Below are positions 19,955-63,164 of a stretch of DNA of 64,000 nucleotides, in pieces. Both the position numbers and the translations under genes were made by a program. Under the pieces are notes generated by a model, which searched no databases, had not been told where the DNA came from, and was given only the letters and a program-made list of their open reading frames with translations. Source of the DNA: Ylistrum balloti (Eukaryota); the NCBI RefSeq assembly GCF_031769215.1, contig NW_026781863.1, positions 310,001-374,000 of the forward strand, read 5' to 3'. Every line of letters begins with the position of its first letter. Positions within the stretch are counted from its first letter, which is position 1.

Positions 19955-22900
19955 ATGGAGTTATCAATATTGGTCCTGGTTATTACGACACAACTCAGAG
20001 GTAAGAGAGTACAAATACATGTCATTTAAATGAATTTTGTCTTTAATTCCATATTTTGAACAAGAGCTCATCTGTCTTAAATGAAAACAATGTTGTCCGA
20101 AGCAATTTCATTCTATTGTAGACAAATACTGCGTACTTCGTATCCATAATCGAATTTGTTTTAGAACGTATTATAATTTATCATTTCGCAATGTATTTAT
20201 ATTTATAAGTGGGTAACATGTTGTAAGTACAGACAACAGGTTAAATTTACATTTTGTACAACATATCGAATCAGCATTAATCTGAATGCATTTAGATTAT
20301 TCATCCCTTCCAGTAAAAAGTACACGAAGATTTCCTTTCTAACTTGATGAAATAGACTCATAATTTTAAAGCAAGCTGAAATATTGGTTCTGTAACGAAT
20401 TAAATATCATTTCATATACGTTTCATAGAATTGAACAATCATTTTTGTAATACTTTGTCCTAATCCTTGAGACAATTATCATAATGCTATGCAATAATCT
20501 TACGATGTATAATATTTTGAAGAAAGCGGAACCTTAAAATAACGATAGAATATTTAACTGATATTTAAAGTCACCCTTATGATTGTCGCTTTACTCTTCG
20601 TCAGTTATTCACTTTTACCGAGTTTAATTACAGTTCACCGCTCGTCATTAGATTTTCAAAGTTAAACGTCGTAGGTTTGGGAGGCGATATCCAAGGAATG
20701 GTCATTTATTAATTCTGTATTAAATTCACTCTTAAAGAAAAATTATCTTCGTCTGCCAAAATGTGTTCTCGCAAAGATGCCTCGTGGACAGAATGTTTTT
20801 ATGTGGTTTTCAGATCAATACAACTGAGAACAGTGAGCTTCTTCATCAAATATGACTTTTAACGATATCCCATGATAGCTTAATCCGGAGGAATTTACAT
20901 TTTATTTTCAAACATACTACACTAATTTGAATGAAAGTGACTTTAATAATTTCATAAAAATTGTCTAGTTCTATTTCTATGTATGACAAATATGTACATT
21001 ATCATGAAAGGGTAAAAATCCAATATTGGGTCATACTAATCCTCCAGAACAGACTTGTATAAAATTGCAGGCAATTGGTGTCCAGCGTTCAATGCCTGTA
21101 AAAACTGGTCTTTTTTCTTCTTACAATCGAATTCCGTAATCGTGAGGTCGGTGAGACCGTGGGGGAAATTTCGAGGTATCCGAGTGGTCAATATATGCAA
21201 GTTTGAATGTTTAATGCGTAGTTTGGTGGGGACCGACGAAATTCCTCGACTTACATAAGGTACTCGCGATAACTACATATATGTAGGTTCAACTGCATGT
21301 TGTTAAAGGGCTGCTAAGTAATTAGCTTAATTTATGTTCGTAATATCATAACAAGCTATTATTTGTTTTAATCCTGGGCTTCTTTTTCTCTTTGGGTGTA
21401 TATATATACGATGTATATATGTGTATGTAAGATCCGGGCTTGCCTCAATGCTGGCTAACTATTGGCTGCTGATGAGCTCATGTGTGTTACATAAGGTGCT
21501 GGTCGCTGATTGGTCAGCTAAGGTTTGGGCCCGCATCCCCTTTCTCATTCAGCAGCCATCTTGAAATTGATTCACATCAGAAGCCCTGGATCTCAAGAGT
21601 TTAAAACCCACCCACAACCTCCCCCTTTTGGTGATACTTGAGGTGCCTTATGACTTTAGTTTAATAAGTCATGAATGGAGTACGATTTACAAGAATTTGA
21701 ACCATTTATTTTGTCAATGTTGGCGGTTTCTGATTAGTATCAGAAGTGTCTTAGTGGCGGTATTTGATTAGTATCAGAAGTGTCGTAGTGGCGGGTTTTT
21801 GTCAACCCCACTTACGCTAGCTGTCATTATTTTTTAAGTAGTATTTGCTTCTATGGTTGATATAATGCAATTACAGTATCTCGGAAATTTTTGTTGAGTA
21901 TTATTGTCATTTGTGTTTTTGAGTCATGGTGTTGACTCTTTGATATATATAATAAATTTGATGTCACCATTTGGGTGGCCATTTTCATTCAATCTGCGTT
22001 TTCTTGTTATACCATAGTAAAGCTTGTTTATTCTTCTACTTAGCTGTATGCGGGCATAAGGTAAAAAAATATCAGTTAGTTTAATAATTTAACTTTTGTG
22101 CACCACCTTCGCGCTTCTCATACAGTATCTTATATAGTACCGTCACTCGGTTAACAGCGGACATAGCACACAGTGTTATCGAGTCGCGGGTATAAGGTGA
22201 GGAGAAAAGTTGCCCATGGAGTGTAGAACATAAAAATATTTTATTCAGGAAACACCGGGATGGACCGAATACATATATTTATCAGTCACATACTAGCATC
22301 ATGACGTTGGAGATGATAAGCCGGCCGCAAAGGGAGAAAACGTTTGATTAATTAAAACAGAAAAACGCTACCAATATCATAGCAGGAAATAGGCCAAGGA
22401 ACTACTGTAATACCACGATTATTTTATCTCTTCTGGACTCTTCGTGTGCCATTATTTGTTAGTCTCTCTGTTAGGTAGATGCTTAAAAAATGTTATATCT
22501 GTCATTTTGTTGCTTTATAAACGTTCTATTACCACGTATGTTAAAATAGAAGGCGTAAGTTGTTTCCGGTCTAAGACTAAACAAACAGGTGTGAACTAAG
22601 AGAGAATGACTTCTTCAATAGACACGGGACAGAACAGACCGCTTGAAATTGATAAATAGATCAATATATAGACGTGGCTGAATTAGGCTTTTATATTGTA
22701 CAGTAACGTATTTATTGAGGACTTTGATGTAACTGTGTTAGGTTTTCCTTCTCCAAACTCTGTGATCGGCACATTATAATTTTTGTAAGTTGAAATAGTT
22801 TCTTCCATCTGCTCGTTATTGGCGATTCACGACGTGCTATCCGAGAGTTTTTTAACTGATATATGCAAGTACTCTGGAGCAAGTGAATACTCGGTAGTAG

Positions 22901-25900
22901 TGAACGCTCAGTCTTAGGGAACACTCGGTAAACAGTGAGTACTCGGAACAGTGAGCACTCCGTCTTAGAGAACACTCGGTAAACAGTGAATACTCGGTAG
23001 TAGTGAGCACTCCGTCTTCGGGAACACTCGGTAAACAGTGAATACTCGGTAGTAGTGAGCACTCCGTCTTCGGGGGCACTCGGTAAACAGTGAGTACTCG
23101 GAACAGTGAGCACTCCATCAACATGAGTACTCGGAACAGTGAGCACTCCGTCTTAGGGAACACTCGGTAAACAGTGAGTAATCGGTAGTAGTGAGCACTC
23201 CGTCTTAGGGAACACTCGGTAAACAGTGAGTATTCGGTAGTAGTGAACGCTCAGTCTTAGGGAACACTCGGTAAACAGTGAGTACTCGGAACAGTGAGCA
23301 CTCCGTCTTAGAGAACACTCGGTAAACAGTGAGTATTCGGTAGTAGTGAACGCTCATTCTTAGGGAACACTCGGTAAACAGTGAGTACTCGGAACAGTGA
23401 GCACTCCGTCTTAGGGAACACTCGGTAAACAGTGAGTACTCGGTAGTAGTGAGCACTCCGTCTTAGGGAACACTCGGTAAACAGTGAATACTCGGTAGTA
23501 GTGAACGCTCAGTCTTAGGGAACACTCGGTAAACAGTGAGTACTCGGAACAGTGAGCACTCCGTCTTAGAGAACACTCGATAAACAGTGAGTATTCGGTA
23601 GTAGTGAACGCTCAGTCTTCGAGAACACTCGGTAAACAGTGAGTATTCGGTAGTAGTGAACGCTCAGTCTTAGGGAACACTCGGTAAACAGTGAGTACTC
23701 GGAACAGTGAGCACTCCGTCTTAGAGAACACTCGGTAAACAGTGAATACTCGGTAGTAGTGAGCACTCCGTCTTCGGGAACACTCGGTAAACAGTGAATA
23801 CTCGGTAGTAGTGAGCACTCCGTCTTCGGGGGCACTCGGTAAACAGTGAGTACTCGGAACAGTGAGCACTCCATCAGCAGTGAGTACTCGGAACAGTGAG
23901 CACTCCGTCTTAGGGAACACTCGGTAAACAGTGAGTACTCGGTAGTAGTGAGCACTCCGTCTTAGGGAACACTCGGTAAACAGTGAGTATTCGGTAGTAG
24001 TGAACGCTCAGTCTTAGGGAACACTCGGTAAACAGTGAGTACTCGGAACAGTGAGCACTCCGTCTTAGAGAACACTCGGTAAACAGTGAGTATTCGGTAG
24101 TAGTGAACGCTCATTCTTAGGGAACACTCGGTAAACAGTGAGTACTCGGAACAGTGAGCACTCCGTCTTAGGGAACACTCGGTAAACAGTGAGTACTCGG
24201 TAGTAGTGAGCACTCCGTCTTAGGGAACACTCGGTAAACAGTGAATACTCGGTAGTAGTGAACGCCAGTCTTAGGGAACACTCGGTAAACAGTGAGTACT
24301 CGGAACAGTGAGCACTCCGTCTTAGAGAACACTCGATAAACAGTGAGTATTCGGTAGTAGTGAACGCTCAGTCTTAGAGAACACTCGGTAAACAGTGAGT
24401 ATTCGGTAGTAGTGAACGCTCAGTCTTAGGGAACACTCGGTAAACAGTGAGTACTCGGAACAGTGAGCACTCCGTCTTAGGGAACACTCGGTAAACAGTG
24501 AGTACTCGGTAGTAGTGAGCACTCCGTCTTAGGGAACACTCGGTAAACAGTGAATACTCGGTAGTAGTGAGCACTCCGTCTTAGGGAACACTCGGTAAAC
24601 AGTGAGTACTCGGAACAGTGAGCACTCCGTCTTAGGGAACACTCGGTAAACAGTGAGTACTCGGAACAGTGAGCACTCCGTCTTAGGGAACACTCGGTAA
24701 ACAGTGAGTACTCGGAACAGTGATAACTCGGTAGCGGTGAATACTCTTGTAACAGTAAGCGTTCGTTAATAATACAATTATATCCCAGATAGGGAATAGG
24801 AAACGCTGTATTGACATATCAGTAAATAGTTCTGTTATATGTGGATATACTCTAATGAAGAATACTCAGAGGTGACGAGTAATTATTATATCTCTTACAA
24901 TATTAGTCATTGCTGAATAGTCGGTCGTGAATAAAATGAAGATATTTGGCAAGCTGTAGATTCATAATATCTGTATATATCTGTGTTAGGTGGTTGTAGT
25001 ATTGACTATCTCTATACTAGACAAGATACAAGATCATCAGTAGGAACCGATACGAACCCGGTATACGTCACACTACAATAGCTCGTCAGGAAGGTGTGAA
25101 TTTGTATGTCTTTAATATACCAAGCTATACAATACAGTTGTACCACAGAAAATTGTATCAAAGAGTACAAATGCATGATATGAATATCCTATTAATTTGG
25201 TACCATATAAGATGTGACATGGTACACAAGATTGTTGGATTGAAAAATGTGCCATGGTACAAACAGAAAAACGAAAAATCCTATTATTTCGTCAGGCTCT
25301 TGTCAACCGTAGTAGTCTTGGGATTTCAAAAATAGAAAAAAACGATAGCCGGATTTACCAATGTCGGTTCTTGTACATTCCGGGTGTCGTCGATGGAGGC
25401 TTATCCTTTCAGTTCACCTGTCGTTTACATCAATACAGTGACATCAGCTCAGTATGACCAATAGAGTTAGGTTAGATTATATAACTGTTTTTGTTCCAAT
25501 TATTTTCAGTTGGAGAGACTCTTTACACAGATCTGGTTCTTAGCCCGAATGCAATGTCTTGGAGTAAGTCCGAAACATATTGCCAGGGGCAAAATGGGCG
25601 ACTTCTCGTGTTGGACAGTAAGGAGAAATGGGACCAATTCACTTCTCACGAGGAGTATAGGAAAAACGACATGTAAGACTGATTACACATATAATTGTCT
25701 AGTTTAATACAAATCAAGCTGTTTTGTATAATTGATCGACTTTAATATCCCCGGGCTGGACATGTTATTGAATAGAAGTGAAGATATCTCCCAACTAGGT
25801 TGATACAATCCAATCCTTGTTCGCAGAAAATCACTTTTTACATCAATCACTAGTAGTGACTAGTACATCAAGTTTATTATTCATATTCAGAACACAACTT

Positions 25901-28900
25901 TATCGAGAAGGTAAGATTCAATAAGACCCTACATTGTTAAAGTGAACCTTATGATAAAGACAAAGTTTTTTTTATTTTAGAAATTTCTTGTACGCTAGTA
26001 GTGTCATCAACAAGACAATGTCTTATAAATGAATCAGATAATTGTTCACTTAAACGCTTGTAATATTTATCATATATCTGATTAAATTCAAGCGTCAACA
26101 AGGCCTGTTGGATTGGTATGAAGTTTAATGACACTGTTCAGTGCAACTATACCAATGATTGGAATCAATGGCAGTACAGTGGATGGAGTAGATGGGCTGA
26201 TGGCACCTGGGAGCCCAACTATTGCCCCAAACAGAAGTGTGTCAAACTGAAAAATAACGAAATGTACACAGCGTATTGTTATAAGCAATTACAAGCTATA
26301 TGTGAGATAGGTAAGTTGTGGTTTAAAACATTGAACTTCTTTAAGTTTGTATTCTTTACCAATATGAACGATAACCGGATATTTGAGATGCCAAATAAGC
26401 GCAGTTCATAAATATTAATTGTAATCAGTTTCAGTTGTAAAAGTAGTGATAAACGACTGATGTTTGTGTGATTGTCTCATAAATCAATACTTAATATTGA
26501 CCAAACCACTAACAACAACTACTGGATTCTTTTCGGAGCCATTCGTAACCCCATCGGCTTATCTATTGTTTTATATGCGTACGTTATCAGTCCTCGCCTA
26601 CACTGAAGTCATTTCAAACTATATTCCATAGAAATACTGTTAACACAATCCATACTGTTTCAGGGGAGAAAACTCTTGTTGAAAATCAATTAATGTTTCT
26701 CAACATCAGACTGTGTTATTCCTCAGTGTTTCATAGAGTGTTACGTACGGTGGCTTATACCTGCCATTTTGTCTTTTCGCTTTGTTGTCCGAGAAAAGAC
26801 GGTGGGCGAAAAATGAAATAATGAAAAGACAAAACCCACGCGAAAAGTAAGAGAAAAAACACACAACAAACATCAAACTATGACAATCAAACAAGTTATT
26901 GTTTCCTCTGTTTGGCGTCTTTTCTTTGGTGTCCGTTTTTGTTGCATGCAGGTACTAAGGGTGCCACTCTTTCCATAATGACAAACATAAATATATCATT
27001 TGAATGTAGAATGCGGATATCTGTTCTAGGGTAATTCTGATTGAGCTATATCACTAAATACTGATTTCGAGAAATATATTTAATATCCTTATAAATTTAC
27101 TTTCGACATTTAAACCTTGTTATCTTCTCCGGGTGATGATAAGAAACATGAATAATTCAGGCGTTTATTAAAAGAAATAATCCACCGTCCAGTCGTTTGT
27201 TTGGCAACTTTTCTCAAATGAAATTACAATCCCCAATTTAAATATGTAAATGAGGTGACTCTAATCAAGTTAGTTTTCAACTTTTTCTTCATACACATTT
27301 TTATGTAATTCATATATGTAAACTGTTATAGGGCACAACGTTTTCTAACTTATATTTCTTATTTTAATATTAACAAAGTTGGATAAAAACATTCTGATAG
27401 GTGAAAAAGTAATTGTTAAAAAAAACCTATATCCTTATATACTACTTCCAATCTTAAAAGACATGGCAATATCAATACAATCAGGCAAAAGATTGATGTT
27501 GTGAATTCAACTTCCGACACTGGCATCTCTGCCATTGAACCTTTGACGCAGTTCACTCCAACAACCGAAGAAGAATTGCGCAAGATCATTACAAACTCTC
27601 AATCGAAATCCTGTGAGCTGGACCCGCTTCCCACAGTTTTACTGAAGCAATGTCTTGATGCACTGCTTCCCTTGATCACCTTTAATCATGAACAAATCAT
27701 TAGCAGAGTCTAGGGTTCCATTGTGTTTCAAGACGGCTAATGTAAGACTACTGCTGAAGAAGCCTGGACTGAACAAGGAAGAATTAAAGAACTACCTTCC
27801 GGTGTCAAATCTCCCTTTCTTATTTAAGATCTTGGAGAAGATCGTGTCCCAGTGACTTGAGGCTCATCTCCATGCTAACAGTCTTCATGACAACTTGCAA
27901 TCAGCCTATCGCACAGGACATTCCACTGAGACGGACCTACTTCGTGTCTACAGTGATATTGCTGCCGCTCTGGATAACAAGTGTAGAGCGGTTCTTATCA
28001 TGCTTGATCTGTCTGCTGCATTTGATGTCATTGACCATGGCACACTGTTCAAGCGTCTGGAGTACTCTTATGGGGTGACTGGTGATGCATTACGCTGGAC
28101 CCAGTCTTACTTGAATGAACGACGACAGTGCGTTGCCATTGGATCAACTGCTTCAGACAGCAAAACCTTAGACATCGGAGTTCCTCAGGGGTCCGTTCTG
28201 GGACCTAGAAAATACTGTCTTTATTCGAAACCAATCGGGGAGATTTGTCGTCGTCATAACATTCAGTACCATTGTTATGCCGACGACACACAAATCTACA
28301 TGGTTATCAGACCTCAAGACATCTGGGACATAATAGTAGCAAGTCTTGAAGCCTGTCTAAATGACATCAGTGCTTGGATGAACTCAAATATGCTCAAGCT
28401 CAATCAGGAAAAGACAGAACTGATCGTCTTTTCCCACAAGTGTCAACACACTAAAGGTCTCCAGTTAAAGGTCGGTGCCCAAACTATTGAGCCGTCCAAG
28501 CTGTGAGAAACCTTGGTGTACACTTTGATAGCTTTCTGAACATGGAGAGACAGATAAACTCAATTGCCAATTCCTGTTATCACCAAATCAGAAACATTGG
28601 GTGTATCCGTCAGTTCATCATCACAGATGCATGCAAGACATTGGTACATTCTCTTGTTAATTCTAGGTTAGACTTTGGTAACGCGTTACTCTTTGGTGTA
28701 TCTGATACACTAATGAGCCGCCTGCAGAGGGTACAGAACACCGCAGCACGCCTAGTTACGCGTACTCGAAAGAGGGACCACATTACACCAGTCCTTTACT
28801 TATTGCATTAGCTGCCCGTGCGATTCCGGTCACAGTACAAGATTTTGATGTATACATACAAGGCAATAAATGGAACAGCTCCTGAATATTTGCAGGAACT

Positions 28901-31900
28901 TGTCACCGTTTATCGGCCGTCACGATCACTACGATCGGAGACAGAATCCTTATTGTGCGTTCCGAACTCTCGGACTGTGACTTATGGTAACCGGTGCTTT
29001 GGAAAGGTAGCGGTCACTTTGTGGAACAGCTTACCATCTGCTACTAGAAAGTCAAAATCCCTGGCCAAATTCAAGAGGGATATTAAAACCCACCTGTTTA
29101 CGTCTGCATTTTAGACTCTCACGCAGACGTCCTGTACATACATACTATCACCACTACTTACTTGATTTGGTTACTGTGTTATATATGTTGATTACTGTGT
29201 TATACATGTTCTATAAATTTTGTAGTAAGATTATTACGTAATTGTGAAGCGCATTAGAGTATTTTTTTCAAAATAGATAGTGCGCTATAAAGATGTTGTA
29301 TATTATTATTATTATTATTAATATATCTGGCGAAATTCATACGCAAATAATGTTCCGCCTGATTTAACATTTCAATGTAGTAAATTAACTTTTTCAATGT
29401 GTTTGCCAGCGAGACAATTTCCCTTCACGGATCTTGTACTTAGTCCACAAGAAATGTCTAGGGATGACTCAGAAAACTTCTGTCAGAATCAAAATGGCCG
29501 ACTTATTGTACTGGACAGTCAGGAAAAATGGGACTACTTCACCGCTCACGAGGATTACATCAAAAACGATATGTAAGAATCATACACATATTTATACGTA
29601 AAAATCCTACACATATTTATATGTAAAAATCCTATACATATTGATACGTAAAAATCCTACACACATTTATACGTAAAAATCCTACACATATTTATATGTA
29701 AAAATCCTACATATCTTTATTTGTAGGAGTCCTACACATATTTGTATGTAAAAATCCTACACATTTATTTGTAAGAGTCCTACACATAGTGATATGTGAT
29801 GATAATCATTTAACAAGTAAACTTGTTATTGGCCTGTCATACTCTTAACGTATATTGCAATATGATTTATGTTATGCTATATCATTATAATTTGTGTTAA
29901 CACTTTTAACGTGCAACGTATGATTGAATTTTAGGAACTATGAACACTTAGCATACGAGTGTGTATATTGAACTGATACAATAATGGTATGATAACCGGA
30001 GTGAAATATCTTGTCATTTCTAGACATCTGGGGGCGTACTGGATTGGTATGAAGTTTGCTGACACTGTTCAGTGTAACACAACCGAAACGCATACGCCAT
30101 GGATCTACGATGGGTGGGGAAAATGGCGTGACAAGTACTCGGAGCCTAACAAATGTCCATTTGATCGATGTGTTTTATTGAAGACCAATTCGATGCAGAC
30201 AAGGCCGTGTAATCATTTGCATATAGCCCTATGTGGTAATTATTCTGCACTCCTAACCCACACACTCCTCGAGGTCATGTTCATGTACTATTCTTATAAG
30301 CAGTGTCAAGGTTTAGATGATACACATATACTTACCATACCTTAACCTTTGTTCTGACCAATATGGATATTTTGTTATCGTCTCCTAGATTTTAAATACG
30401 CCTTTAGCATGACTTACGCGTCCTGGGAAGCTGTTTAATCTATACGGTACTGTTAAATTCGTTATTTGTATTTAATTCATAATTCTTATTAAATGTTGCT
30501 GATCACTTGTGTGTGTTTTGCACAATCCTTGTTACAGATCGACTACGCTTTAACATTTATCCGTACTCTGATTACATTTCCTATTTTAATATCTACTGTT
30601 TTAAGATTACTAGATTAACTACATTTTCTGTTAACGGATTGATTTTAATTTCGATTCACTTTTTTTCGAAATGTTGTTGGTGTTGTTTATATGTTGAAGA
30701 AGTACTATTTACTCTAGTATGACCTCACTAAAATCCGTTTAAAACGACTCGTAAATTTTCATGTAAACAGGAGACAGAAAGACGCTGTTGATTACAAAAA
30801 TAAAGTTTCCTTGGTGTCCTGTTTAAGGCCCTGTGATAACATTGATTTAATTGAGTCATACAGATATACCATATGCAATAGCAAAATTTGACAGATATGA
30901 AATAAAATTTCCACTTTACTTGTGCTGTAAATGTTAGTTACTTTTACTTATAATGTAAATGTCATTTATCAATGCTGTAAATGTCATTTATTAATGCTGT
31001 AAATGTCATTTATTTATGCTATAAATGTCATTTATTTATGCTATAAATGTCATTTATTTCTGCTGTAAATGTCATTTATTTCTGCTGTAAATGTCATTTA
31101 TTTATGCTGTAAGTGTCATTTATTTATGCTGTAAATGTCATTTATTAATGCTGTAAATGTCATTTATTAATGCTGTAAATGTCATTTATTAATGCTGTAA
31201 ATGTCATTTACTTATGCTGTAAATGTCATTTATTAATGCTGTAAATGTCATTTATTAATGCTGTAAATGTCATTTACTTATGCTGTAAATGTCATTTACT
31301 TATGCTGTAAATGTCATTTATCAATGCTGTAAATGTCATTTACTTATGCTGTAAATGTCATTTATTAATGCTGTAAATGTCATTTATTTATGCTGTAAAT
31401 GTCATTTATTAATGCTGTAAATGTCATTTATTTATGCTATAAATGTCATTTATTTATGCTATAAATGTCATTTACTTATGCTGTAAATGTCATTTATTAA
31501 TGCTGTAAATGTCATTTATTAATGCTGTAAATGTCATTTATTTATGCTATAAATGTCATTTACTTATGCTGTAAATGTCATTTACTTATGCTGTAAATGT
31601 CATTTACTTATGCTGTAAATGTCATTTACTTATGCTGTAAATGTCATTTATTAATGCTGTAAATGTCATTTACTTATGCTGTAAATGTCATTTATTTATG
31701 CTGTAAATGTCATTTATCAATGCTGTAAATGTCATTTACTTATGCTGTAAATGTCATTTACTTATGCTGTAAATGTCATTTATTAATGCTGTAAATGTCA
31801 TTTATTAATGCTGTAAATGTCATTTATTAATGCTGTAAATGTCATTTATCAATGCTGTAAATGTCATTTATTAATGCTGTAAATGTCATTTATTTATGCT

Positions 31901-40222: not shown

Positions 40223-40483
40223 ATAGATGGATGACTATTTGCTGTTGACAAAGATGAAAATAGTCACATTATCACTATACGGATCATAGAACTACTAAAT
40301 AAATAAGTCTCGGTTGTCCACATGACAAGGTCACACCGGGTATGATACTTAATGATTCATTAGAAAAGAGATGTTTTACGACGTCTTTTTTAGTATTCGG
40401 AATCAATAACACCAAATGTGACTCCAAAGCACTAACGGACCAAATGGTACAGCGGATGTTACAAAATGTCTGTTTAACTAGGA

Positions 40484-43400: not shown

Positions 43401-46130
43401 CCAATAGAGTTAGGTTAGATTATATAACTGTTTTTGTTCCAATTATTTTCAGTTGGAGGCTCTTTACACAGATCTGGTTCTCAGCCCGAATGCATTGACT
43501 TGGAGTAAGTCCGAAACATATTGTCAGAAGCAAAATGGCCGACTTCTCGTGTTGGATAGTAAGGAGAAATGGGACCAATTCACCTCTCATGAGAACTATA
43601 GGAAAAACAACATGTAAGACTGATTACAGACAAAAATTATCGACTTTAATATTCCCTTATTGAACATATTATTTAAGGGGTGAAAATGTGTGAAGGTTAA
43701 TACAATTCAATCCGTTTCGCGGAAGATCATTTTTACTTTTACAAACTAGTACAAATTCAGACCTTTTAGAAATGAAAATTAATACAAACAGTAAGACTTG
43801 ACATTGTAAAACATGAACCTTATGTAGATAAATCTATGATGTTATATTATTAAAGTCAACGAGACGATGTCTTACTAATGAATCAGGGCATGATTCATTT
43901 AAACGCTTGTAATGTTTATATTATCTACCATTAATTTCAAGCGTCATTGGTTCGTATTGGACTGGTATGAAGTTTGCTGACACTGTTAAGTGTGATAAGG
44001 CCAAGGAACATAAGATATGGCTGTTTAATGGTTGGGGTAGATGGGCCAGCGAAAGCTCGGAGCCCAACTATTGCCCACAGCAGCGCTGTGTTAAACTGCA
44101 TAACAACGAAATGTACTCAGCCTTGTGTGATCAGCTATTTCTAGCTATATGTGAGATAGGTAAGCATTGGTTGAAACATTTAACTTCTTTAAGGTTGTAT
44201 TCTTTGGTAACATGCAAAATTTCTATGTGATGGTCAGTCCTTGAGATGGATATAACACTTAATGGTGGCATGATAACATCGTAATACAATACTTTATATC
44301 TACATCAGTGTTAGTCATATTCTTATTATTACCAATCGTCATCATTCTGGGCAAAGAAAGTTTGCATTCTTGGTCGACCTTGGCAAAGTTACAAGTTTGC
44401 ATACCTGGTCGACCTTGTCAAAGTTACAAGTTTGCATTCTTGGTTGACCTTGTCCAGGTTAAAAGTTTGCATACCTGGTCGACCGTACCATAGTTTTATC
44501 GATGCGGTGCGCCAGATTGTATAGAGACCTGTGTGGTAATTATTCTGCAAACCCTCTCCTACCCCTTCAAGGACGCAGATCTTCTTTTATATCCTGATAG
44601 ACTTCAAAGAACCTTTAGCATCGCTGATGAGTCATAGAAATTTTAAAACGCAATATTGTGAATTTAACTTCATTGTTTAGCTCTACTTTTCCTAATTCGT
44701 TATGTATGTTGAAAGGTGCTGATTACTTGTGTGTTTTCTTAAAATCTTCGTTAGAGATCGACTATGCCTTAACGTATGTGTGTACAATGGCCACATTCCC
44801 CAACTTCAATATATACATTGTTTAGTTATACTGATTGTTAACAGATTTATTTTATTTCAATATTCATTCAAACTTTGACTAAATGCATTTACTGTAATAA
44901 TACGTCACTGAGCATCCGTTTAAAGCGACTGGTAACATTTAAACAGGAGACAGGAACTATACAATAGGGTCTCCTTAGTGACGTGTTTAAGGCTCTCGGT
45001 AAACATTGGCTTTAAATTGAATTAAAAGATATAGTTTGATTTAATTGGATAAGAAAATCTTATCAAGTAAATCGTTTACATTACAATCATGCTATGACCT
45101 AAATGCTAGTGTTATTTTGTTTGTGTATGTAAACAGCCTTAAGATACCAATAATTTGAATAATTAATTGTTTCTGATGGAAACGTCAAGGTTTTAAGTGA
45201 AATATTTGAAGTTATTTACTTACACTTTAAATGTATATGATTTCGTGATAATCATTTCTAGCGCTAAGTGACGCTTTTGTACTTTGTTTTTTCACAGATA
45301 TCACTAATGATGCGTGAATTCATCATTTCCCTATTTTGTCAAAACGTGGTAATCCGGTAAAATCTTATTTCGCTTGATAAAGAATACTAGACACTTTTAA
45401 AGTTCAATATATAACCCAGCATTACAATTTTATACAATGATAAAACAACGCACTCTCCTTTTCAGTGTTGGTTCGATCGACGGCGGAATTATCTACAACT
45501 CATAGTCAATCAACAACTAAAGTGTCTTCTACTGTACCAAGTACTCCAACATCCACACCGCATGGAACTGGTGACAACTCTGTGGTGTCGTCTACAACTC
45601 TCAAGTCACAAGAAACTAATACGACGGCACCTGCTTCGGCAACTTCATCCACATCTGGCGCAGAAAACATGACGTCATCTATTCCAGTAACCACGACTGA
45701 CGCAGAAACTATGACGTCATCTATTCTAGTAACTACATCCACGACTGGCACAGAAAAGACGACGAAACCTATTTCAACAACACCTGCAACAACAGTGTTG
45801 CCGGTTTCCTCTGAAGCCGTAAATGACTCGTGTAGACAATGTTGTTTCGTGGTAAACAAGACAAGGGCACTGAATGAACAGGAAAAAGAGGTGATACGAC
45901 ACGAGTTACGGGTTCAGTTAGCTGTAAATAAAACCATCCTTTCTTCTTATATTCGTAAACTCACCAGTGTGTATGACCCCCGGTCCAGCAGTGTAGCTAT
46001 TGGAGGCGTGGCTTGTGTATTCCTCGCGGCGGTTGTCGGGGTGATCATTATTCCGGACTGCGTCACTCTTTTCAGATTTCTCTACAGATATGTAGGATCA
46101 GATCAAGTTATTTCTGGTATCAATCAGTAA
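40484..46130 (+). pseudogene. Lectin gene B: single-CTLD membrane lectin with 2-bp frameshift in exon 2
   Basis: Exons 40484-40529, 43453-43613 (161 nt vs 163), 43942-44159, 45466-46130. ttggaggctc vs ttggaaaggctc in gene C gives TAA at 43506-43508 when spliced from exon 1. Could be an assembly indel or rescued by another leader exon (see findings). Confidence 0.7.
44357..44492. repeat. 35-bp tandem repeat, about 4 copies (again at ~55258-55393)
   Basis: Unit aagtttgcattcttggtcgaccttggcaaagttac. Confidence 0.88.
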
Positions 46131-46837
46131 TCAACGTGATTGATTTCCTTTTGAAATGACTTCGGGTTCTTATTAATTAATATAGATTCAGTTCTATGGA
46201 ATGCGATTGAAAATTTTCTTAACAGGAATACCACTAATAAACCTGGAAGGGTTTATCAATATTACAGCAAATAAGAATAAACTTATTTCGTAACAAAGAG
46301 ATAAAATATCATAATATCAACATAAAAAATAGAAAAGGAATAATAGATAAATTAAAGTAGATAATGTATATGTTTTCCGGATATTTAATAAGGTATACCT
46401 TATATTATACTTGTTGATATGCTAAAGTTACAAAAAAGTATGTTTTTTTTTACTTCAGATGTATTCCAGTGCAAAACTTTCTGTGCTAACTTTACTTGAT
46501 ATAAATAATCTTATAAAGACCTAAATCTCCGTAAAATCTTACTTCGTCTTAAACATCGACTTACTATGCAATAGGTCGTATAGGCAATAAACCAGCATTT
46601 TTTCGCACGAAGTTTTCAAAGTTCTAAATATAATATTGTATCGCAATTTTTCTGTTAGGATAGCAAAATATTGGAGACATGAGCACGAAAGATGGATAAA
46701 CACAAATCACTCTGTCTCTGATAACATATTTTGAGAAAGATAAAACTCACGAGCTTTATCGTAAAAAATAGTTTGATGAACCCCGATATCTCATGGTCCT
46801 TTTTATTGTATTTAAAGTATAAGATGCACATTTCACA

Positions 46838-47680
46838 CTGTGAAAACATGACACCTTCAAAAACATCATGTCTGACAATACACCTCCAACATCTGGTCCC
46901 CTCAAGGAGGTTGTCCGATTTAAGGGTCATGACAAATGTTTCAGCCACAAGCTGAAGGATGTAGGTTTTGCATCTAACATTAAATATGACGTCCATGTGA
47001 CGGAAAACATCTGATGATAACAAGACTTCTATCCATCCTCAGCCTCCTTATAAACTACTTGACCAGAAACTGTGTCAGTATGTCCAACAATACAAGGTTA
47101 TATGTGGAGAATGAAAAAAAATCTTATAGAATGCGATTCTGTGACACTGCAAAAGTAAAATTATATAAATGGTAGTATTTAAGAGTCGTGTCCAAGATAT
47201 GTGAATGTCCCCAGCCAGTGATATCTAGTTATGAAATGAAGACATCAACATCAGTGCAACGAAATACGAAACACCTGACTGTCGCACATTTAAAGCAAAC
47301 TACACCGCGGCCTGGCTGTGTATGAGTTCACTGGGCAGACTGACGGTTACACAGACACCGGGTCTGTAGTGTGCAACACCACTAATGAGGAGGAACATGG
47401 TGATGCCACTGAAAGTGTCGCTGTTTTCAGATACTGAGAAACATAGCACTGGCATATGATAAAGGCTTAAGAGACGAATGAGTATCTACGTGTATAAGAA
47501 AACATTCAACAGACCTGATCCTTCATCGTCATATTGTATTGTTATCAATGGAAGTTCACGTCACTTTAGTCTACGATTTTATTGAATATTCGATGATAAA
47601 TGACACAATAGAGTTGATAAGCGGATTATGCCAGTTTATAATAAACTCTTAACAATGCTGCGGACTTTGCAACAGCTCAA
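46838..47680 (+). pseudogene. Decayed TRIM-like relic (unit 2)
   Basis: Copy of 35950-36790. Confidence 0.7.
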
Positions 47681-48761
47681 ATACATACGAGTAAAATATA
47701 ACATTTTCATAATTACAAAAGAGCGTGTAGTTTGGTGTAGTGACTATCAAATCAGTGGTTGAGGTTAACATTACATAAGATAATATTCGAAATTCAACTA
47801 GATATACCAACAGTTCAACATATTCATAATCTGAAACTTGATAAACCTAGGGCAAAATATAAACAAAGGAAAGATTTTGAGAAAAAATTCAGGTAAAATA
47901 CGTTATTGGTCTAAATAATTAATGTAGCAACTCACTTTCCCAACTCTGTTCATAAGAGCATCTGATCAAAAGGGAAAAGGAAACTTGGATTCCGTTTCTC
48001 TCATAACAAAAATAACGAAAAGTGAATACGAAGACACAGAAAACATTAAAGATTGAATCTTGCTGATGTCGATTTCATGGGATGATGAATTGAGTCGGCC
48101 TCGAGACAAATTTAATGAACTGCGAAGTTGGGGAGTTTTCTCCCCTTACGTAATATTTGTATTCATACGCACTAGCAATGTTAATCTGGTCAAATTCATC
48201 GGTAAATGAAACAGATCACATTTAGTAGTTTCATTGAGTCTGATTTGGGAAGTGAAATATTACATATTGAATCTTCAAGGGTTTTCACATCAGTTGTTGT
48301 TTTGTTATTTTTTATATCGAAATATTATAGTCGTTGAACTCTCAATGAACAAATGAGACACCAACCAGAACACGAACGTTGGACAGTTACAATTAGATGA
48401 CGGAGGCTGATAAAATTGCTGTAAGATTTGAACGGAAGCACAATTATATAAAGCGTTGCTGATTTTTTAGCTGAAATATTTTCAGAATGAACCATTTTAA
48501 AAGGTGCCATTGACTTGTATGTCTTTTGAGCAATCTTTGATATTTCAATGGACCAAATAGGACATCAGTCTGTTTGTGGTCAAAGTTAAAAGTTATGCCA
48601 CTTAATAACGTCACTTAATTTCGTAAATAGTGTTTTCCTTTACTTATCAGTATAAGAGAACTATGTGATAAAGACAAGAAGAACATATGAATATTGTAAT
48701 CCCAAACTCCAAAGCGGGGAGTCAAGGACTCGTTTAGAATAGAAAAGAATATTAGTGTCAA

Positions 48762-48994
48762 AGTCTAGCTCTGCAATCAACAAACTATATATGGGAAAAA
48801 CAGCAACCTGTCGCAGAATTCTAAGTAGGTCGCAAGATTTGGTGAATGCATAGCAGAATCCAAAGGTGAAATCATTTTCGGTAATAGAGAAATGTTGACG
48901 TCAGTTGAGACCATGCTACACAAGACAAAAAAAGGCCCAGAAAAGAAATTGGTGACCCAATGAAGATAACTAAAAACCCTGTTACCATTAACAG
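48762..48994 (+). pseudogene. TRIM-like gene fragment (unit 2)
   Basis: Copy of 37873-38105. Confidence 0.85.
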
Positions 48995-49680
48995 CCGGTA
49001 AATCTAATTCATCCAGCATCGCAGTTCCGGCACGAGTAGTGACCGATATAATATATGAAAAATATATTTTTAAAAAAATAGGCGAACAATGAGTGAAATT
49101 GTGTCATATTGGTATCTAAGATTTGCTTGTGGTGCTAGGCTCAGATACCTATTGAATACTGAAGAAGATTGATATTGGCCGAACTAAATGTTGATAGAAA
49201 ATTCAGACTGTTAGCATCACTGACGAGTCTTGCAGGGAAGAAAAAAACATTATTCAGGTAAATCCCATGTATGACTTTACTGTATTTAAAACCAAATTTG
49301 AATTAAAGGGTATATGCACTAAAGATATATGTCTTTAGTACAATCTTCGAGGCTGCAGGTGGTAGATATCGCTGGTGGGCTTTCCCCCTCCGCTTTGCTG
49401 TTGCGTGACCTGCATGCCAGGTTTAATTCATTTAGATAGCGGCACAGGTCAGAATATACACATCAAATTGACTTTGTTCTAAACTTATCAGATATGATAA
49501 CTTCTCGTTGTTAATATTCTTATCTACACATCCACACTTATGGATGTTAAATATAACTGGAGGTTGGCGAAGCAAAAATAAAATTTGAACAGTTTCATTT
49601 AACCAATAACAACACCCTTAAATTAGAGCAAAGCATAAGGTTAACGTCGACCAGAATTAAAACTTTTTTATCTTTTAAAA

Positions 49681-50300
49681 TATACTCAAGGGATAACGAA
49701 ATGCAGGGCGACATTGTTTGCAATATCTTATCAATATACGCGTTGTTAAAAAACAACGAATATTGGTCAAACAGCTCTCTAGGTTACAGTTTCACGTGGT
49801 CCTGTATCGAATGTTGCATTATAGTATTGGGTGATGATGTCTTTCGGGGAAAACACGCAATGCGAAAAACGTCGTGCACAGCAGTGTTGTGACATTGAGT
49901 CACACTGCTCGTCATACCATTATGAGACAAATCATTTTCCGATGTCCTGATTAATTTCTGATAGCATTTCACAAAATGGCACGCTTGACGGGAGTTCGAG
50001 GAGTCAGGCCATTGCGATAGTTATGCAAGGTCAAAGGAAAATGCAGGTTGTCAGACATTACGGTGTCCATATCTGCACTATAGGACGTCTTCTTAGACGT
50101 CTAAGGGAAACATGGCAAACTGCTAACAGACCTATGTCTGGGTGTCCGCGCATGACGTCACAACGTCACAACAAGACAGGTTTATTCGTCGTTTTTACAC
50201 CTTTCTCCCACTGAATTTGCCCTTCATACAATAGGTACTCATAACCGTCCTGTCCATGCAAAAACTGTAAGGAAACGATTGCGGGAAGTTGGTCTGCGAA

Positions 50301-50348
<48 letters not shown>

Positions 50349-51119
50349 AGTTTTTCGTCTTCTTTACTCTGTCCGTCGCCGGGTCAGCGGGTACGTCACC
50401 CATTTATAGGTCTGCCCCTTACCGCGCCTCGTCGCCAGCGTCGTATGGCTTGAGTAGCGGCACATGCCCTTAGAATATTCCGATTGAGGCAGCGGAGGCA
50501 GGTCTTATGTAGTGTAGGGAGGAATATCACAAGGATTTAATCACCACTGGTTGTGAAAGCTGGTGATTTAACTACCGCGAAGTATAGAGATGAGATCCTA
50601 CGACCCTATTTTGTCCCATTATTGCAGCAAAACAAACTCACATTCTAGCAGGATAATGCTCGGCCCCATGTAGCGAGGATCTGTCGCGACTTTCTCACTA
50701 ACAACAATAACCACCCACGGCCCTATTCAATCCTACTGAGCACTTGTGGGACCAGCTTGATAGACAGGTACGATGATGCCAGCCCCCCCCCCCCCTTACT
50801 CTTGCCCAACTGTGAGCAGCCCTCTTGAAAGAAGGGACAAACATTCCAATGAAGAGGATAAACTCATCTATGATTTCCATAGGGGACATACCCGGTATTG
50901 ACCAGGCAGCATCTACTATCAGTCCATTGCTATTCAGATTCTTTCCATCAATTACTCCTATATCACTTACCAAATGAAAGTCGTTGATTTTTGATTTTGC
51001 AGTTTGTTCTGTATGGAATAAACTTCATTCTTACTTAAAAATATTGAACATTATACTCGACGTATTGCCTAAAATCATCTTCAAAGTTTACCCTGCCTTC
51101 ATTTATCACTTGCGTATAT
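49681..51119 (+). mobile_element. Tc1/mariner fossil (unit 2)
   Basis: Copy of 38790-40222 with a longer (GAT)n and shorter poly-C. Confidence 0.9.
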
Positions 51120-51380
51120 ATAGATGGATGACTATTTGCTGTTGACAAAGATGAAAATAGTCACATTATCACTATACGGATCATAGAACTACTAAATAAA
51201 TAAGTCTCGGTTGTCCACATGACAAGGTCACACCGGGTATGATACTTAATGATTCATTAGAAAAGAGATGTTTTACGACGTCTTTTTTAGTATTCGGAAT
51301 CAATAACACCAAATGTGACTCCAAAGCACTAACGGACCAAATGGTACAGCGGATGTTACAAAATGTCTGTTTAACTAGGA

Positions 51381-54300
51381 ATGGAGATATCAGTGTTGAT
51401 CCTGATCATCACGTCTTTACTGAGAGGTAAGACTGTACAAATACACGTTCAATTATCTTCAATTACGTTTAATTGATTTTCGCATTTGTAAATGTGTGAG
51501 CAGCTATTTTGAATGATAGCAAAGCTATGCGAATCGATTGCATATTCTATTTCACAAAGGCTGTGTATCCATAACCAAATTTGTTTGAGAAATATTATCA
51601 TTCGGGTTGAATTAATATTTAACAGTCTGAACAGCTGGTAACAAAAAACCACCAGAACTGCAATAAGTGAGCTAATATATGGAAGTATATTTAACACAGA
51701 CAGCATGTAATATTTACATTCTGTGTGTTGACAGATGGTATCGGTATTAGAATAAATCCTTTATAACTTGATAAATTGACTTAGTCACAGTTTTTGAAAT
51801 CAAATTTGAATTATAACAGTTGCTAAAGATCGGTAGCTAAGATTGTTGATGTCAATATATTCCTGGTGACAAATAACTAGTCAGGAAGTCTATAGGGACA
51901 CCACTCTATCTTTCTGTCACACATTTATACAGACAATGCAATCCGACAAGACCTTTTTTGAAATGTTATCTTGGGTCGGAAGATATGTCTGATTTTTATT
52001 TGAAAGTAATGTGAAACATGGGGTCTTAAATCAATTAAACATCTTTTAAAATATGATACCATAGAAAGGAATCATTACGGATGTATTCAGTATATGAAGC
52101 ACCATATAAATATAACTTTAGCCTTATCTGCTTATCTTACCTCTTATATGTATGTACATCATCAATTAATCAGTCGTGCTTGAAACTTGTTTGGTCAAAA
52201 CAGTTTTTAATATCATCAAATTTCTCTACCAGTATTTTGGTAAGACTTTTTTTCATGTTATTTGTAAGGTATATTTTTGCGTGCTCTACTTAAATTATGT
52301 AAATATAGATTTATATTGTACATGTACGTTTACGCGAACATATTAATGAAATATACATATTAGTCATTTCTGAAGATCATCATTATTACAAATGGTCCTT
52401 GATTGTTTCTTGTCGTCTGTCTTTATTACCTATGTTGTGAAACGTGAAACTCAGGTGAGTGCATTCAACCGATTTTGTTGTGGTAGGCATGCCTACAATT
52501 GTGCTCAATAATCGATTTTTCAATATCTTTTTTTAACTTGTTGAATTGAAGTAAATGTGTCTTAACAAGCATGAACGTTTCATATTTAGTAAACTTTTAA
52601 TTTATGAATCATGCTTTGTTTCTATTTTCTCCATTCCTATAAATTTGATATGACTGACAGAGTTGGTAAAACGTTTAACTCCTTACTTCTACACCTGTAC
52701 ATGTTTATAGTTGCTGCTGAATTTGTTGTATTGATAAACTGTTTTAAATCGATTGATCTGGTCATTATTAATGTATATCTTGTCCTCAGATCGCTATGTA
52801 TGAAACCCTTACGACTACAACGTGCTGAAAATAACATACATATGATATTTTATACATGGATATTGAGGTAGAGTCGAATCTATGGGATGACTGATTTTCA
52901 TCATTGGAATTGGTTCTTTCTCCATTTATTTGGGTCACCATGACGGCAAATATATCTCTTGACTGTGACACGTGTATCTTACGTATGGAGCTGGTTACAA
53001 TTTGTTTTGTTTTTAGTTTGCCATTTAATAGCATCGATTACTGCAAACTACAGTTTGGATCGAGATGAATGATTTTTTACTTAAATTTGAATATAAAATT
53101 TAAACAATTTTGTATCAACACGAAATGTTATGTTACATGTCTGATTTAACATATTTTTTGTAGTTTTCTTTTACTTGTAATGGTGAAATGGCATAATAAC
53201 ATTCCAACGTATATCAGAAATTGGAATCTGCATATTTCACTGCAATTAGGGGATACATAGGTATCTCATCAATATACAAATAAATATATATATAAATATA
53301 CAAGTTTGTAAATGATTCCATTTCAAAATTTAAAAGAAAAATACATCAAAAGATTCAAAATGAACTGCAAATCAAGTTATTTATAATCTCAATCCAGAAA
53401 ATATTAGTAGGTATGTTTGTTTACCTGGTATTTGATAGTGCATTATTTCACAGAAGTTAATAACATCTGATAAATGTTTCATTTTAATATCTCATAGCTC
53501 ATCAGGGCTTATGAATAATGTTCTTTATAGACAACAAAACATAAAACTGTTTTAAATAGCTTCATATCTACTGCAAATAAAATTCGCTATGCTTATTCAG
53601 ACCAGAGTGTGTATATATTTGAAAGGTTGGTTTTCTGTTTAAAGTGTTTTATAAATTAACAAACGAGACAAGATCCATTTTACATCATATTCACAGTAGA
53701 ATTCACAGTAGATTGCAGTAGAAGAAATAATACTTACTATACAACATACATTAGAAGCTACTGTACATAAATTTTAGGATCATTGTCAGTACGAATAGAA
53801 AGAAAAAGAAAATTTCAGAATTCATTATTAGACAATCAATGACTTTTTAACTTAGCGAAAGCAGCTCTCATGTCACGAGAAGCATATCCGGCGTTTCTTT
53901 AAGACATCTTGTGTTTAAGTGGCACCATGCGCAAAGCAGTGTAAACAAGATGCCGGAGACGACAACAATCTTGTAACACTAAAAATATACTAAAATATTT
54001 TCTACTCGAAAGTGATTGATTTGGATTTTTGAGTTCATCATGCAATAACAGATCATTTGGTTATGTTTAAATGCCCAAAAGGACTACAAAAATACCCGTC
54101 GCAGTTAGATGTTGTTGATATATTTCATTCGCAAGGGTTGACTGACACTTTTCCCGTAAAATATATCAATTTTTGTACGAACGGCATTGATTTGGTTAGC
54201 TCCACGTTACATTCCGCGTGTCGTCTATGGAGCAGAGGATGGTTATCCTTCCAGTTCACCTGTCGTTTACATCAATACAGTGACATCAGCTCAGTATGAC

Positions 54301-57031
54301 CAATAGAGTTAGGTTAGATTATATAACTGTTTTTGTTCCAATTATTTTCAGTTGGAAAGGCTCTTTACACAGATCTGGTTCTCAGCCCGAATGCATTGAC
54401 TTGGAGTAAGTCCGAAACATATTGTCAGAAGCAAAATGGCCGACTTCTCGTGTTGGATAGTAAGGAGAAATGGGACCAATTCACCTCTCATGAGAACTAT
54501 AGGAAAAACAACATGTAAGACTGATTACAGACAAAAATTATCGACTTTAATATTCCCTTATTGAACATATTATTTAAGGGGTGAAAATGTGTGAAGGTTG
54601 ATACAATTCAATCCGTTTCGCGGAAGATCATTTTTACCTTTACAAACTAGTACAAATTCAGACCTTTTAGAAATGAAAATTAATACAAACAGTAAGACTT
54701 GACATTGTAAAACATGAACCTTATGTAGATAAATCTATGATGTTATATTATTAAAGTCACCGAGACGATGTCTTACTAATGAATCAGGGCATGATTCATT
54801 TGAACGCTTGTAATGTTTATATTATCTACCATTAATTTCAAGCGTCATTGGTTCGTATTGGACTGGTATGAAGTTTGCTGACACTGTTAAGTGTGATAAG
54901 GCCAAGGAACATAAGATATGGCTGTTTAATGGTTGGGGTAGATGGGCCAGCGAAAGCTCGGAGCCCAACTATTGCCCACAGCAGCGCTGTGTTAAACTGC
55001 ATAACAACGAAATGTACTCAGCCTTGTGTGATCAGCTATTTCTAGCTATATGTGAGATAGGTAAGCATTGGTTGAAACATTTAACTTCTTTAAGGTTGTA
55101 TTCTTTGGTAACATGCAAAATTTCTATGTGATGGTCAGTCCTTGAGATGGATATAACACTTAATGGTGGCATGATAACATCGTAATACAATACTTTATAT
55201 CTACATCAGTGTTAGTCATATTCTTATTATTACCAATCGTCATCATTCTGGGCAAAGAAAGTTTGCATTCTTGGTCGACCTTGGCAAAGTTACAAGTTTG
55301 CATACCTGGTCGACCTTGTCAAAGTTACAAGTTTGCATTCTTGGTTGACCTTGTCCAAGTTAAAAGTTTGCATACCTGGTCGACCGTACCATAGTTTTAT
55401 CGATGCGGTGCGCCAGATTGTATAGAGACCTGTGTGGTAATTATTCTGCAAACCCTCTCCTACCCCTTCAAGGACGCAGATCTTCTTTTATATCCTGATA
55501 GACTTCAAAGAACCTTTAGCATCGCTGATGAGTCATAGAAATTTTAAAACGCAATATTGTGAATTTAACTTCATTGTTTAGCTCTACTTTTCCTAATTCG
55601 TTATGTATGTTGAAAGGTGCTGATTACTTGTGTGTTTTCTTAAAATCTTCGTTAGAGATCGACTATGCCTTAACGTATGTGTGTACAATGGCCACATTCC
55701 CCAACTTCAATATATACATTGTTTAGTTATACTGATTGTTAACAGATTTATTTTATTTCAATATTCATTCAAACTTTGACTAAATGCATTTACTGCAATA
55801 ATACGTCACTGAGCATCCGTTTAAAGCGACTGGTAACATTTAAACAGGAGACAGGAACTATACAATAGGGTCTCCTTAGTGACGTGTTTAAGGCTCTCGG
55901 TAAACATTGGCTTTAAATTGAATTAAAAGATATAGTTTGATTTAATTGGATAAGAAAATCTTATCAAGTAAATCGTTTACATTACAATCATGCTATGACC
56001 TAAATGCTAGTGTTATTTTGTTTGTGTATGTAAACAGCCTTAAGATACCAATAATTTGAATAATTAATTGTTTCTGATGGAAACGTCAAGGTTTTAAGTG
56101 AAATATTTGAAGTTATTTACTTACACTTTAAATGTATATGATTTCGTGATAATCATTTCTAGCGCTAAGTGACGCTTTTGTACTTTGTTTTTTCACAGAT
56201 ATCACTAATGATGCGTGAATTCATCATTTCCCTATTTTGTCAAAACGTGGTAATCCGGTAAAATCTTATTTCGCTTGATAAAGAATACTAGACACTTTTA
56301 AAGTTCAATATATAACCCAGCATTACAATTTTATACAATGATAAAACAACGCACTCTCCTTTTCAGTGTTGGTTCGATCGACGGCGGAATTATCTACAAC
56401 TCATAGTCAATCAACAACTAAAGTGTCTTCTACTGTACCAAGTACTCCAACATCCACACCGCATGGAACTGGTGACAACTCTGTGGTGTCGTCTACAACT
56501 CTCAAGTCACAAGAAACTAATACGACGGCACCTGCTTCGGCAACTTCATCCACATCTGGCGCAGAAAACATGACGTCATCTATTCCAGTAACCACGACTG
56601 ACGCAGAAACTATGACGTCATCTATTCTAGTAACTACATCCACGACTGGCACAGAAAAGACGACGAAACCTATTTCAACAACACCTGCAACAACAGTGTT
56701 GCCGGTTTCCTCTGAAGCCGTAAATGACTCGTGTAGACAATGTTGTTTCGTGGTAAACAAGACAAGGGCACTGAATGAACAGGAAAAAGAGGTGATACGA
56801 CACGAGTTACGGGTTCAGTTAGCTGTAAATAAAACCATCCTTTCTTCTTATATTCGTAAACTCACCAGTGTGTATGACTCCCGGCCCAGCAGTGTAGCTA
56901 TTGGAGGCGTGGCTTGTGTATTCCTCGCGGCGGTTGTCGGGGTGATCATTATTCCGGACTGCGTCACTCTTTTCAGATTTCTCTACAGATATGTAGGATC
57001 AGATCAAGTTATTTCTGGTATCAATCAGTAA
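51381..57031 (+). CDS. Lectin gene C: type-I membrane C-type lectin with one CTLD, mucin-like stalk and TM (363 aa)
   Basis: Exons 51381-51426 (MEISVLILIITSLLR), 54352-54514, 54843-55060, 56367-57031. Phases 1-2-1, total 1092 nt, open frame; WTGM and EPN motifs. Confidence 0.85.
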
Positions 57032-63118: not shown

Positions 63119-63164
63119 ATGGAGATATCAGTGTTGATCCTGATCATCACGTCTTTACTGAGAG
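63119..63164 (+). CDS. Lectin gene D, exon 1 (signal peptide); gene continues beyond the window
   Basis: atggagatatcagtgttgatcctgatcatcacgtctttactgagag/gtaaga, identical to exon 1 of genes B and C. Confidence 0.8.

Follow-up and report, generated by a model that had tools for sequence, protein, structure and literature searches.

Recent unequal crossover as the probable source of a near-constant last exon in a C-type lectin-like gene cluster of the bivalve Ylistrum balloti

The stretch of Ylistrum balloti DNA studied here (RefSeq assembly GCF_031769215.1, 648 Mb; contig NW_026781863.1, positions 310001-374000; 64,000 nucleotides, hereafter the window) carries genes of a four-member cluster, A to D, whose predicted products join one or two C-type lectin-like domains (CTLDs) to a last exon encoding a stalk and a transmembrane (TM) helix. 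Exon by exon, a Ylistrum balloti protein (P0013) is 97-99% identical to another contig of the assembly. The initial annotation, made from the letters alone, noticed nearly identical last exons behind strongly differing lectin heads and proposed a variable/constant receptor system. We consider it probable, at about 0.78, that the shared last exon comes from a recent unequal crossover, which copied a 10.9-kb block, and is not a selected "constant region". In the same joint explanation, the divergent loops of the CTLDs would follow from the heads A1, A2 and D (A1 and A2 being the two CTLDs of gene A) being old and under relaxed purifying selection.

The evidence for the duplication comes from a self-comparison extended by 30 kb of flank beyond the window, in which most of gene D lies (locus L008). 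We found a head-to-tail array at 34546-68838, made of three full units followed by a terminal 705 bp (68134-68838); features are on the plus strand unless stated otherwise, and positions past 64000 are window-equivalent. Unit 1 (34546-45436; 10,891 bp) holds the last exon of A, intergenic DNA, exons 1-3 of B and intron 3 of B, and is followed by unit 2 (45437-56337; 10,901 bp) and unit 3 (56338-68133; 11,796 bp), the last of these lying in the window as far as 64000. Within a unit, a last exon is followed by ~5.2 kb of intergenic DNA and then by exon 1, the two CTLD exons and the introns belonging to them. As the unit boundary falls 29 bp ahead of the last-exon acceptor and the 705-bp repeat ends 11 bp past the stop, the array opens and closes with a last exon, and that of gene A doubles as the left terminal repeat. 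Around B and C, identity over the whole 10.9-kb block is 99%. With coding exons masked, the non-coding divergence was 0.48% between B and C and 0.70-0.75% between B/C and D, and the last exon was no better conserved than the surrounding non-coding DNA of the units. An intergenic ATG/GAT trinucleotide microsatellite, present in 9, 15 and 6 copies at 39412-39438, 50301-50345 and 61235-61252, could serve as a marker separating the unit copies. Transposase-looking open reading frames in the intergenic part of the unit gave no Pfam match.

The site patterns within the 705-bp segment locate the exchange. Fourteen substitutions, together with an indel of 3 bp at the left edge, are found in A only, all at or before 34987 and none later; of the sites differing in D only, three precede 34987 and five lie between 35026 and the stop (Fisher p=0.002 for the switch). 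The last exons of B and C are thus D-like in their 5' part and A-like in their 3' part, and the crossover interval spans 34988-35025 in A coordinates (no strand assigned), with B, C and D agreeing against A on its left and A, B and C agreeing against D on its right. Beyond 35250 the flank of D is unrelated. A D-5'/A-3' hybrid is expected if the last exon of A had crossed over unequally with that of a D-type gene further downstream. Read in this way, B and C are chimeric genes that combine exons 1-3 of D type and a hybrid last exon with a 3' untranslated region (UTR) of A type, which carries the poly(A) signals of A.

Tandem duplication by nonallelic homologous recombination, with hybrid genes at the junctions, is well known from the classical opsin and globin arrays. 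The present cluster resembles these in its flanking direct repeats, the same 705-bp repeat standing at both ends of the array, in internal repeats that are hybrids with a single switch point (34987/35026), and in a uniform identity that includes non-coding DNA. It differs from them in that the recombining repeat is one exon-sized tract of 705 bp, itself homogenised earlier.

The gene models show what was copied. All four genes begin with a signal-peptide exon and close with a last exon; between these, A has two CTLDs and B, C and D have one, every CTLD being split over two exons. The CTLD number of two versus one recorded in the initial annotation therefore holds for A against B and C. Exon 1 of A (19955-20000) contains the ATG and a signal-peptide-like hydrophobic stretch and ends at the donor GTAAGA in phase 1. 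Exons 2 (25510-25672; Pfam Lectin_C, 24.1 bits at profile positions 2-39, with splice sites) and 3 (26093-26310; long loop and EPN motif) encode the N- and C-terminal halves of CTLD 1, and exons 4 (29410-29572) and 5 (30024-30235) those of CTLD 2. The last exon (34575-35239) encodes a Ser/Thr-rich stalk, a CxxCC juxtamembrane region, the TM helix, a short tail and the stop. In gene B, exon 1 (40484-40529; signal peptide) is followed by an exon 2 of 161 bp instead of 163 (43453-43613), an exon 3 identical to that of C (43942-44159) and the hybrid last exon (45466-46130). Gene C comprises exon 1 (51381-51426), exon 2 with an open frame for the N-terminal CTLD half (54352-54514), exon 3 for the C-terminal half (54843-55060) and its hybrid last exon (56367-57031). 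For gene D, exon 1 is at 63119-63164 and the last exon at window-equivalent 68163-68827. Both the start and the end of the CTLD cassette are in phase 1, as is the start of the last exon, so that cassette gain or loss and exon-level recombination keep the frame.

The near-identity of the last exons was confirmed at 13 nucleotide differences per 660 between A and B, 11/660 between A and C and 2/660 between B and C. The loop peptides, encoded at 26139-26219 (A1), 30070-30150 (A2), 43988-44068 (B) and 54889-54969 (C), belong to second CTLD exons that differ at 35/70 (A1-A2), 33/72 (A1-C) and 36/70 (A2-C) amino acid positions. The strong difference among heads, at 33-36 of 70-72 residues, is accordingly real, with the exception of B and C (0/72), which leaves three distinct heads, not four, among A1, A2, B and C. 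A shared-exon locus of the protocadherin or UGT1A type was rejected, as every gene possesses a separate signal-peptide exon and a separate, stop-bearing last exon, with poly(A) signals 100-150 nt 3' of the stop. The first reading had missed the 10.9-kb block as a whole, gene D, a frameshift in B and the absence of 818 bp upstream of B and C.

An older layer of exchange is visible between A and D. Between them, exon 1 has a synonymous divergence (dS) of 0.65, the first and second CTLD exons have values of 0.18 and 0.55, and the last exon stands at 0.03, below both the second (p=7e-9) and the first CTLD exon (p=0.009). Homology between A and D occurs only in sharp-edged, exon-sized tracts of 316 bp (first CTLD exon), 351 bp (second) and 705 bp (last). 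A tract at 25395-25540 covers the end of an intron and the start of exon 2, and within it A and D are identical at 25410-25540, that is, over the last 100 bp of the intron and 31 bp of the exon. Its 115-bp intron part was found at four places in the genome only, which are the four genes of the cluster, and a repeat was thereby ruled out; an RNA element was also considered, but the predicted fold is no better than that of shuffled sequences (z=+1.2), and we read the segment as a conversion tract instead. The mosaic of dS values points to repeated short gene conversion between the paralogues before the crossover. From the levels of divergence, we infer that conversion had brought the last exons of A and D to ~97% identity before the crossover used them. 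The suggestion that unequal crossover or conversion had acted on the 3' exon is thus supported by the terminal 705-bp repeats, the hybrid last exons (p=0.002) and the low last-exon dS (p=7e-9).

Taken as a sequence of events, the cluster would have started from two old paralogues standing head to tail, A with two CTLDs and D with one. Gene conversion would first have homogenised their last exons over the 705-bp tract, after which a recent unequal crossover between these exons would have copied everything from the last exon across the intergenic DNA as far as D-type exons 1-3, and a second round of duplication would have given the copies B and C. The near-constant last exon would then be an outcome of recency and recombination, and not of selection for constancy.

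Two of the four copies appear damaged and to be decaying, or at least redundant. In gene B, the first CTLD exon has lost 2 bp from a GA repeat at its start, which shifts the frame and leads to a stop inside the exon (in the phase set by exon 1). Both B and C are without the 818 bp that D carries directly upstream of exon 1. The D-specific segment (62284-63100) occurs nowhere else in the genome. Towards its 3' end it is colinear with the DNA lying 5' of exon 1 of A, although weakly, the match to the last ~200 bp of the segment being 71% over 80 bp (E=6e-6). The deletion has an ATG microhomology at both ends, and A matches D at the junction. The segment is likely to be the ancestral proximal promoter and 5' UTR, and with its loss B and C have probably lost an ancestral proximal promoter or 5' UTR. 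A and D are intact as far as the sequence goes.

Whether B and C are both real was considered separately. They could in part be an assembly artefact in which two haplotypes of one inserted copy were placed in tandem, the true haplotype having fewer copies. Heterozygosity in bivalves is expected to span a range that includes 0.48%, and the divergence between B and C is compatible with this. A search of public runs found no RNA run with the stretch and five DNA-type runs from two studies with 65-69% of its 31-mers, the C-type share being at most 0.69 in all five. When contigs of four public runs were compared on gene C, they carried the D-type base at 20 of the 40 sites listed, including 5/5 sites in the second CTLD exon, and also had the D-specific intron insert, the end of the D upstream segment (30/30) and the D 3' flank (29/30); no B- or C-type contig was found among them. 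The insert, of ~95-100 bp, lies in intron 3 of D (L008:2812-2907, window-equivalent 66812-66907) and is missing from B and C. The D-only contigs hint at either copy-number variation or an assembly artefact, but contigs cannot reveal copy number, and of the copy-number variation between individuals that had been proposed only this hint stands. The last-exon Logan contig is ~2x as deep as its neighbours, a depth we did not use as copy number. On the other hand, the array has no gap, the only run of Ns being at 10175-10316; B and C each have private substitutions and indels, and their microsatellites differ at 9 versus 15 repeats; and at least one real duplication is needed to account for the hybrid last exon and for the 818-bp deletion common to both. 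We regard it as unlikely that one or both of B and C are such an artefact.

Selection on the heads was assessed with the ratio of nonsynonymous to synonymous divergence (dN/dS). For the second CTLD exon, dN/dS was 0.56-0.58 in the comparisons of A1 with C or D and 0.35-0.38 in the pairs with A2, and for the 27-codon loop the pairwise values were 0.46-0.63, except for A2 versus C at 0.15; between the old paralogues, the ratio was below 1 everywhere. The Jukes-Cantor divergence of the second CTLD exon (0.34-0.35) was level with that of the adjoining intron (0.30-0.32). Within the loop, the proportion of nonsynonymous differences (pN) was 0.33 in comparison with an intron divergence of 0.26, not a significant excess (z=1.05), although with ~13 synonymous loop sites the test is weak. 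Diversifying selection on the loop, as first suggested, thus finds no support, and the comparison of dN/dS in exons 3 and 5 with intron divergence, which the initial annotation itself had named as capable of refuting its view, revealed no significant elevation. Among the young copies, pN/pS summed over all exons was 0.69, which is close to neutral.

Some of these patterns could nevertheless come from a functional receptor set with variable heads and a constant anchor, in which conversion and crossover keep the stalk/TM exon uniform, for example for a common partner, while diversifying selection acts on the loops and copy number varies between animals. The homogenised tracts are the first CTLD exon and the last exon and spare the loop-bearing exon; the family alignment has variable stretches between invariant W, C, G and EPN positions; the public contigs lack B/C-type sequence; and D differs from B/C in the loop-bearing second CTLD exon by five nonsynonymous and no synonymous changes, a threefold excess over the non-coding rate (2.3% versus 0.70%; p=0.02, post hoc). 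Conversion from A was rejected as the source of these five changes, the residues being absent from A1 and A2. Opposed to a selected constant anchor are the loop dN/dS of 0.46-0.63, which does not exceed intron divergence, the non-coding DNA of the unit, which is conserved as much as the last exon, the frameshift in B and the missing proximal upstream region of B and C, the terminal exon that each gene has of its own, and the identities at older loci described below. We consider such a receptor set quite unlikely.

The wider family is informative on the constancy of the anchor. The second CTLD exon of this type had ten matches in the genome, and the order of first CTLD exon, second CTLD exon and stalk/TM exon recurs at at least five further loci of the genome (C675 carries two; C1346, C258 and C27 carry one each) as well as in Mizuhopecten yessoensis (L017). 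At these older loci and in Mizuhopecten, the last exon shows 41-53% identity and the CTLD exons 32-53%, so that the anchor is not more constant than the head across the family. The Mizuhopecten model P0001, named "cell wall protein DAN4-like" (L017:6777-10702, NEDP02076516.1), spans the stalk/TM exon only, and the CTLD exons 2-3 kb upstream of it were apparently missed by the annotation. In sum, the variable/constant receptor system originally proposed is not supported: every gene has its own terminal exon, the non-coding DNA is equally conserved, the last exon diverges at older loci and two copies are damaged.

The explanation by recent crossover has its own weak points, which should be set against it. 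The order of conversion and then crossover rests on inference from divergence levels. The splice models are predictions from reading the DNA and aligning the copies, with GT-AG introns in phases 1/2/1, and expression of the cluster is likewise predicted from sequence, no RNA run having matched. That the public contigs are of D type only means that B and C could partly be an artefact of assembly. Finally, the 5:0 changes between D and B/C (p=0.02) suit adaptive change better than neutral decay.

The C-terminal 103 residues of the last exon (34928-35236, 45819-46127 and 56720-57028) form an anchor module that extends well beyond this family. Its matches number at least 115 in this genome, and 338 cluster representatives of the public protein set also carry it; it was C-terminal in nearly all of the 150 matches listed. 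Among the 62 longer matches, the ectodomains included Lectin_C (22), Ig (7), IgGFc-binding (4), F5/8-C (discoidin; 3) and WSC (3), and further kringle, PAN, EGF, SUEL lectin and sushi domains; the named sources were scallops, oysters, Aplysia, Littorina, Batillaria and a chiton. Invariant residues are S, R, G and D; two Cys, L, R, S and P are nearly so. The module had no Pfam family in the searched copy and lacked a solved relative, and a brief literature search turned up no description of it, which proves no absence. One could go further and see the cluster as the local case of a mollusc design, in which a terminal anchor module (CxCC, helix, RK..SV.DSRPSS, TM helix ending in Pro-Asp) is recombined behind many heads and kept uniform within clusters by conversion and crossover as the loop exon escapes and diversifies. 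We hold this to be rather improbable; if true, it would mean individually variable surface-receptor repertoires with one common membrane partner.

To characterize the heads and the anchor, each exon was used singly for searches and folds. The first CTLD exons matched Pfam PF00059 at 24.1 and 24.4 bits (profile positions 2-39), above the Lectin_C cut-off of 22.6 bits, and the second CTLD exons, scored alone, reached 15-19 bits on positions 41-106, under that cut-off; a full-length homologue (P0002) matches positions 4-106. The framework cysteines are present, as ETYC Cys in the first CTLD exon and as the invariant C49, C62 and C70 in the second, where WIGM or WTGM occupies the WIGL-type motif and an extra invariant pair, C17 and C44, occurs. 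By profile, cysteines and WIGL-type motif, the exons thus belong to the C-type lectin-like domain. EPN is found in 5/5 CTLDs, with E and P invariant in the nine-sequence family alignment, and the invariant W, C, G and EPN-x-CP positions flank two variable stretches of the second CTLD exon, C17-W26 and W34-E40. Searched against PDB, the family profile of that exon hit only CTLD chains (Ly49, mannose-binding protein A and CD69), weakly (E ~0.1-0.5), and its EPN aligned with the EPN of mannose-binding protein A, again at a weak E-value; the second CTLD exon of A1 alone gave nothing meaningful. The WND motif is absent, the aligned positions reading MYT, MQT or MYS, so that Ca2+ site 2 is incomplete and sugar binding cannot be assumed.

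The last exon had no Pfam match and no PDB relative. About half of its first 117 residues are Ser or Thr, and it has five N-glycosylation sequons. A model of the last 103 residues placed a helix at 20-35, a short helix at 42-49 and a long, confident TM helix at 56-101. The cytoplasmic tail, of ~20 residues, has no YxxL/I, its only YxxPhi being YRYV beside the membrane. The proteins are predicted to be type-I membrane glycoproteins with one or two CTLDs, a mucin-like Ser/Thr stalk of ~115 residues, a cysteine-bearing juxtamembrane helix and one TM helix. Their role is probably cell-surface recognition or adhesion, the CTLDs being held on an O-glycosylated stalk. The CxxCC segment is a candidate for inter-chain disulphides, and any signalling would presumably pass via a partner instead of the short tail. 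A ~60-bp relic of the end of intron 3 and the last-exon acceptor lies at 32940-32995, 1.6 kb upstream of the last exon of A; if it served as a phase-1 acceptor, about seven residues and a stop would follow, for a putative secreted form with two CTLDs.

Expansions of C-type lectins in bivalves are described as lineage-specific tandem CTLD genes that vary in domain number and have signal peptides and, in some cases, TM segments; atypical sugar-site motifs are common in them, and a C-terminal TM domain, as in CgCLec-HTM and ScCTL-1, is termed unusual (PMC10140915, PMC12842671). The present cluster is alike in its tandem CTLD genes and variable domain number, but here a long mucin-like stalk and a conserved juxtamembrane/TM module carry the CTLD, and the crossover and conversion history is resolved to breakpoints. 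The closest functional analogues, likened by description as membrane-anchored bivalve CTLD receptors, are oyster CgCLec-HTM and CgCLec-TM1, in which, as summarised in PMC13027682, a hemITAM tyrosine motif recruits Syk. Unlike the CgCLec-HTM type so described, the tail here is ~20 residues long and has YRYV but no YxxL/I, and a hemITAM signalling route is therefore not supported. Biomphalaria has polymorphic single-pass TM genes in clusters, for which a link to schistosome resistance is described (PMC13712769). Those too are mollusc genes with a signal peptide, an ectodomain and a single TM segment, and they differ in presence or absence among haplotypes; their ectodomains are Tie2-ligand-binding or MEGF-like, whereas those of the present cluster are CTLDs.

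Several other features lie within or beside the cluster. Intron 3 of A contains a fragment of a non-LTR retrotransposon with reverse transcriptase (27420-29111; Pfam RVT_1, 2.3e-22), of which a 95%-identical inverted copy at 10317-11376 (minus strand) abuts the assembly gap at 10175-10316. Satellites occupy intron 1 of A (52-bp unit, ~1.8 kb, 22882-24715) and intron 5 of A (22-bp unit, ~78 copies, 30943-32659), and further satellite arrays are found at 613-1729 (45 bp), 2541-3687 (41 bp) and 16952-17419 (24 bp). A single open frame of 517 aa (12661-14214, plus strand), which encodes a B-box zinc finger (Pfam 8.9e-09) and is probably a TRIM-like gene, lies upstream of the lectin cluster.

As a whole, the cluster is an ordinary gene-family expansion, and its mechanism, conversion followed by unequal crossover with hybrid junction genes, is textbook. 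As a by-product, the analysis brings out a mollusc-wide membrane-anchor module without a Pfam family that stands behind many recognition ectodomains. For the growth of immune-type families in bivalves, the cluster offers a worked example at breakpoint level, in which an exon-sized homogenised tract would have become the substrate of the crossover and the new copies would be chimeras that quickly gained disabling changes. It also cautions that a recent segmental duplication can be misread as a "constant region".

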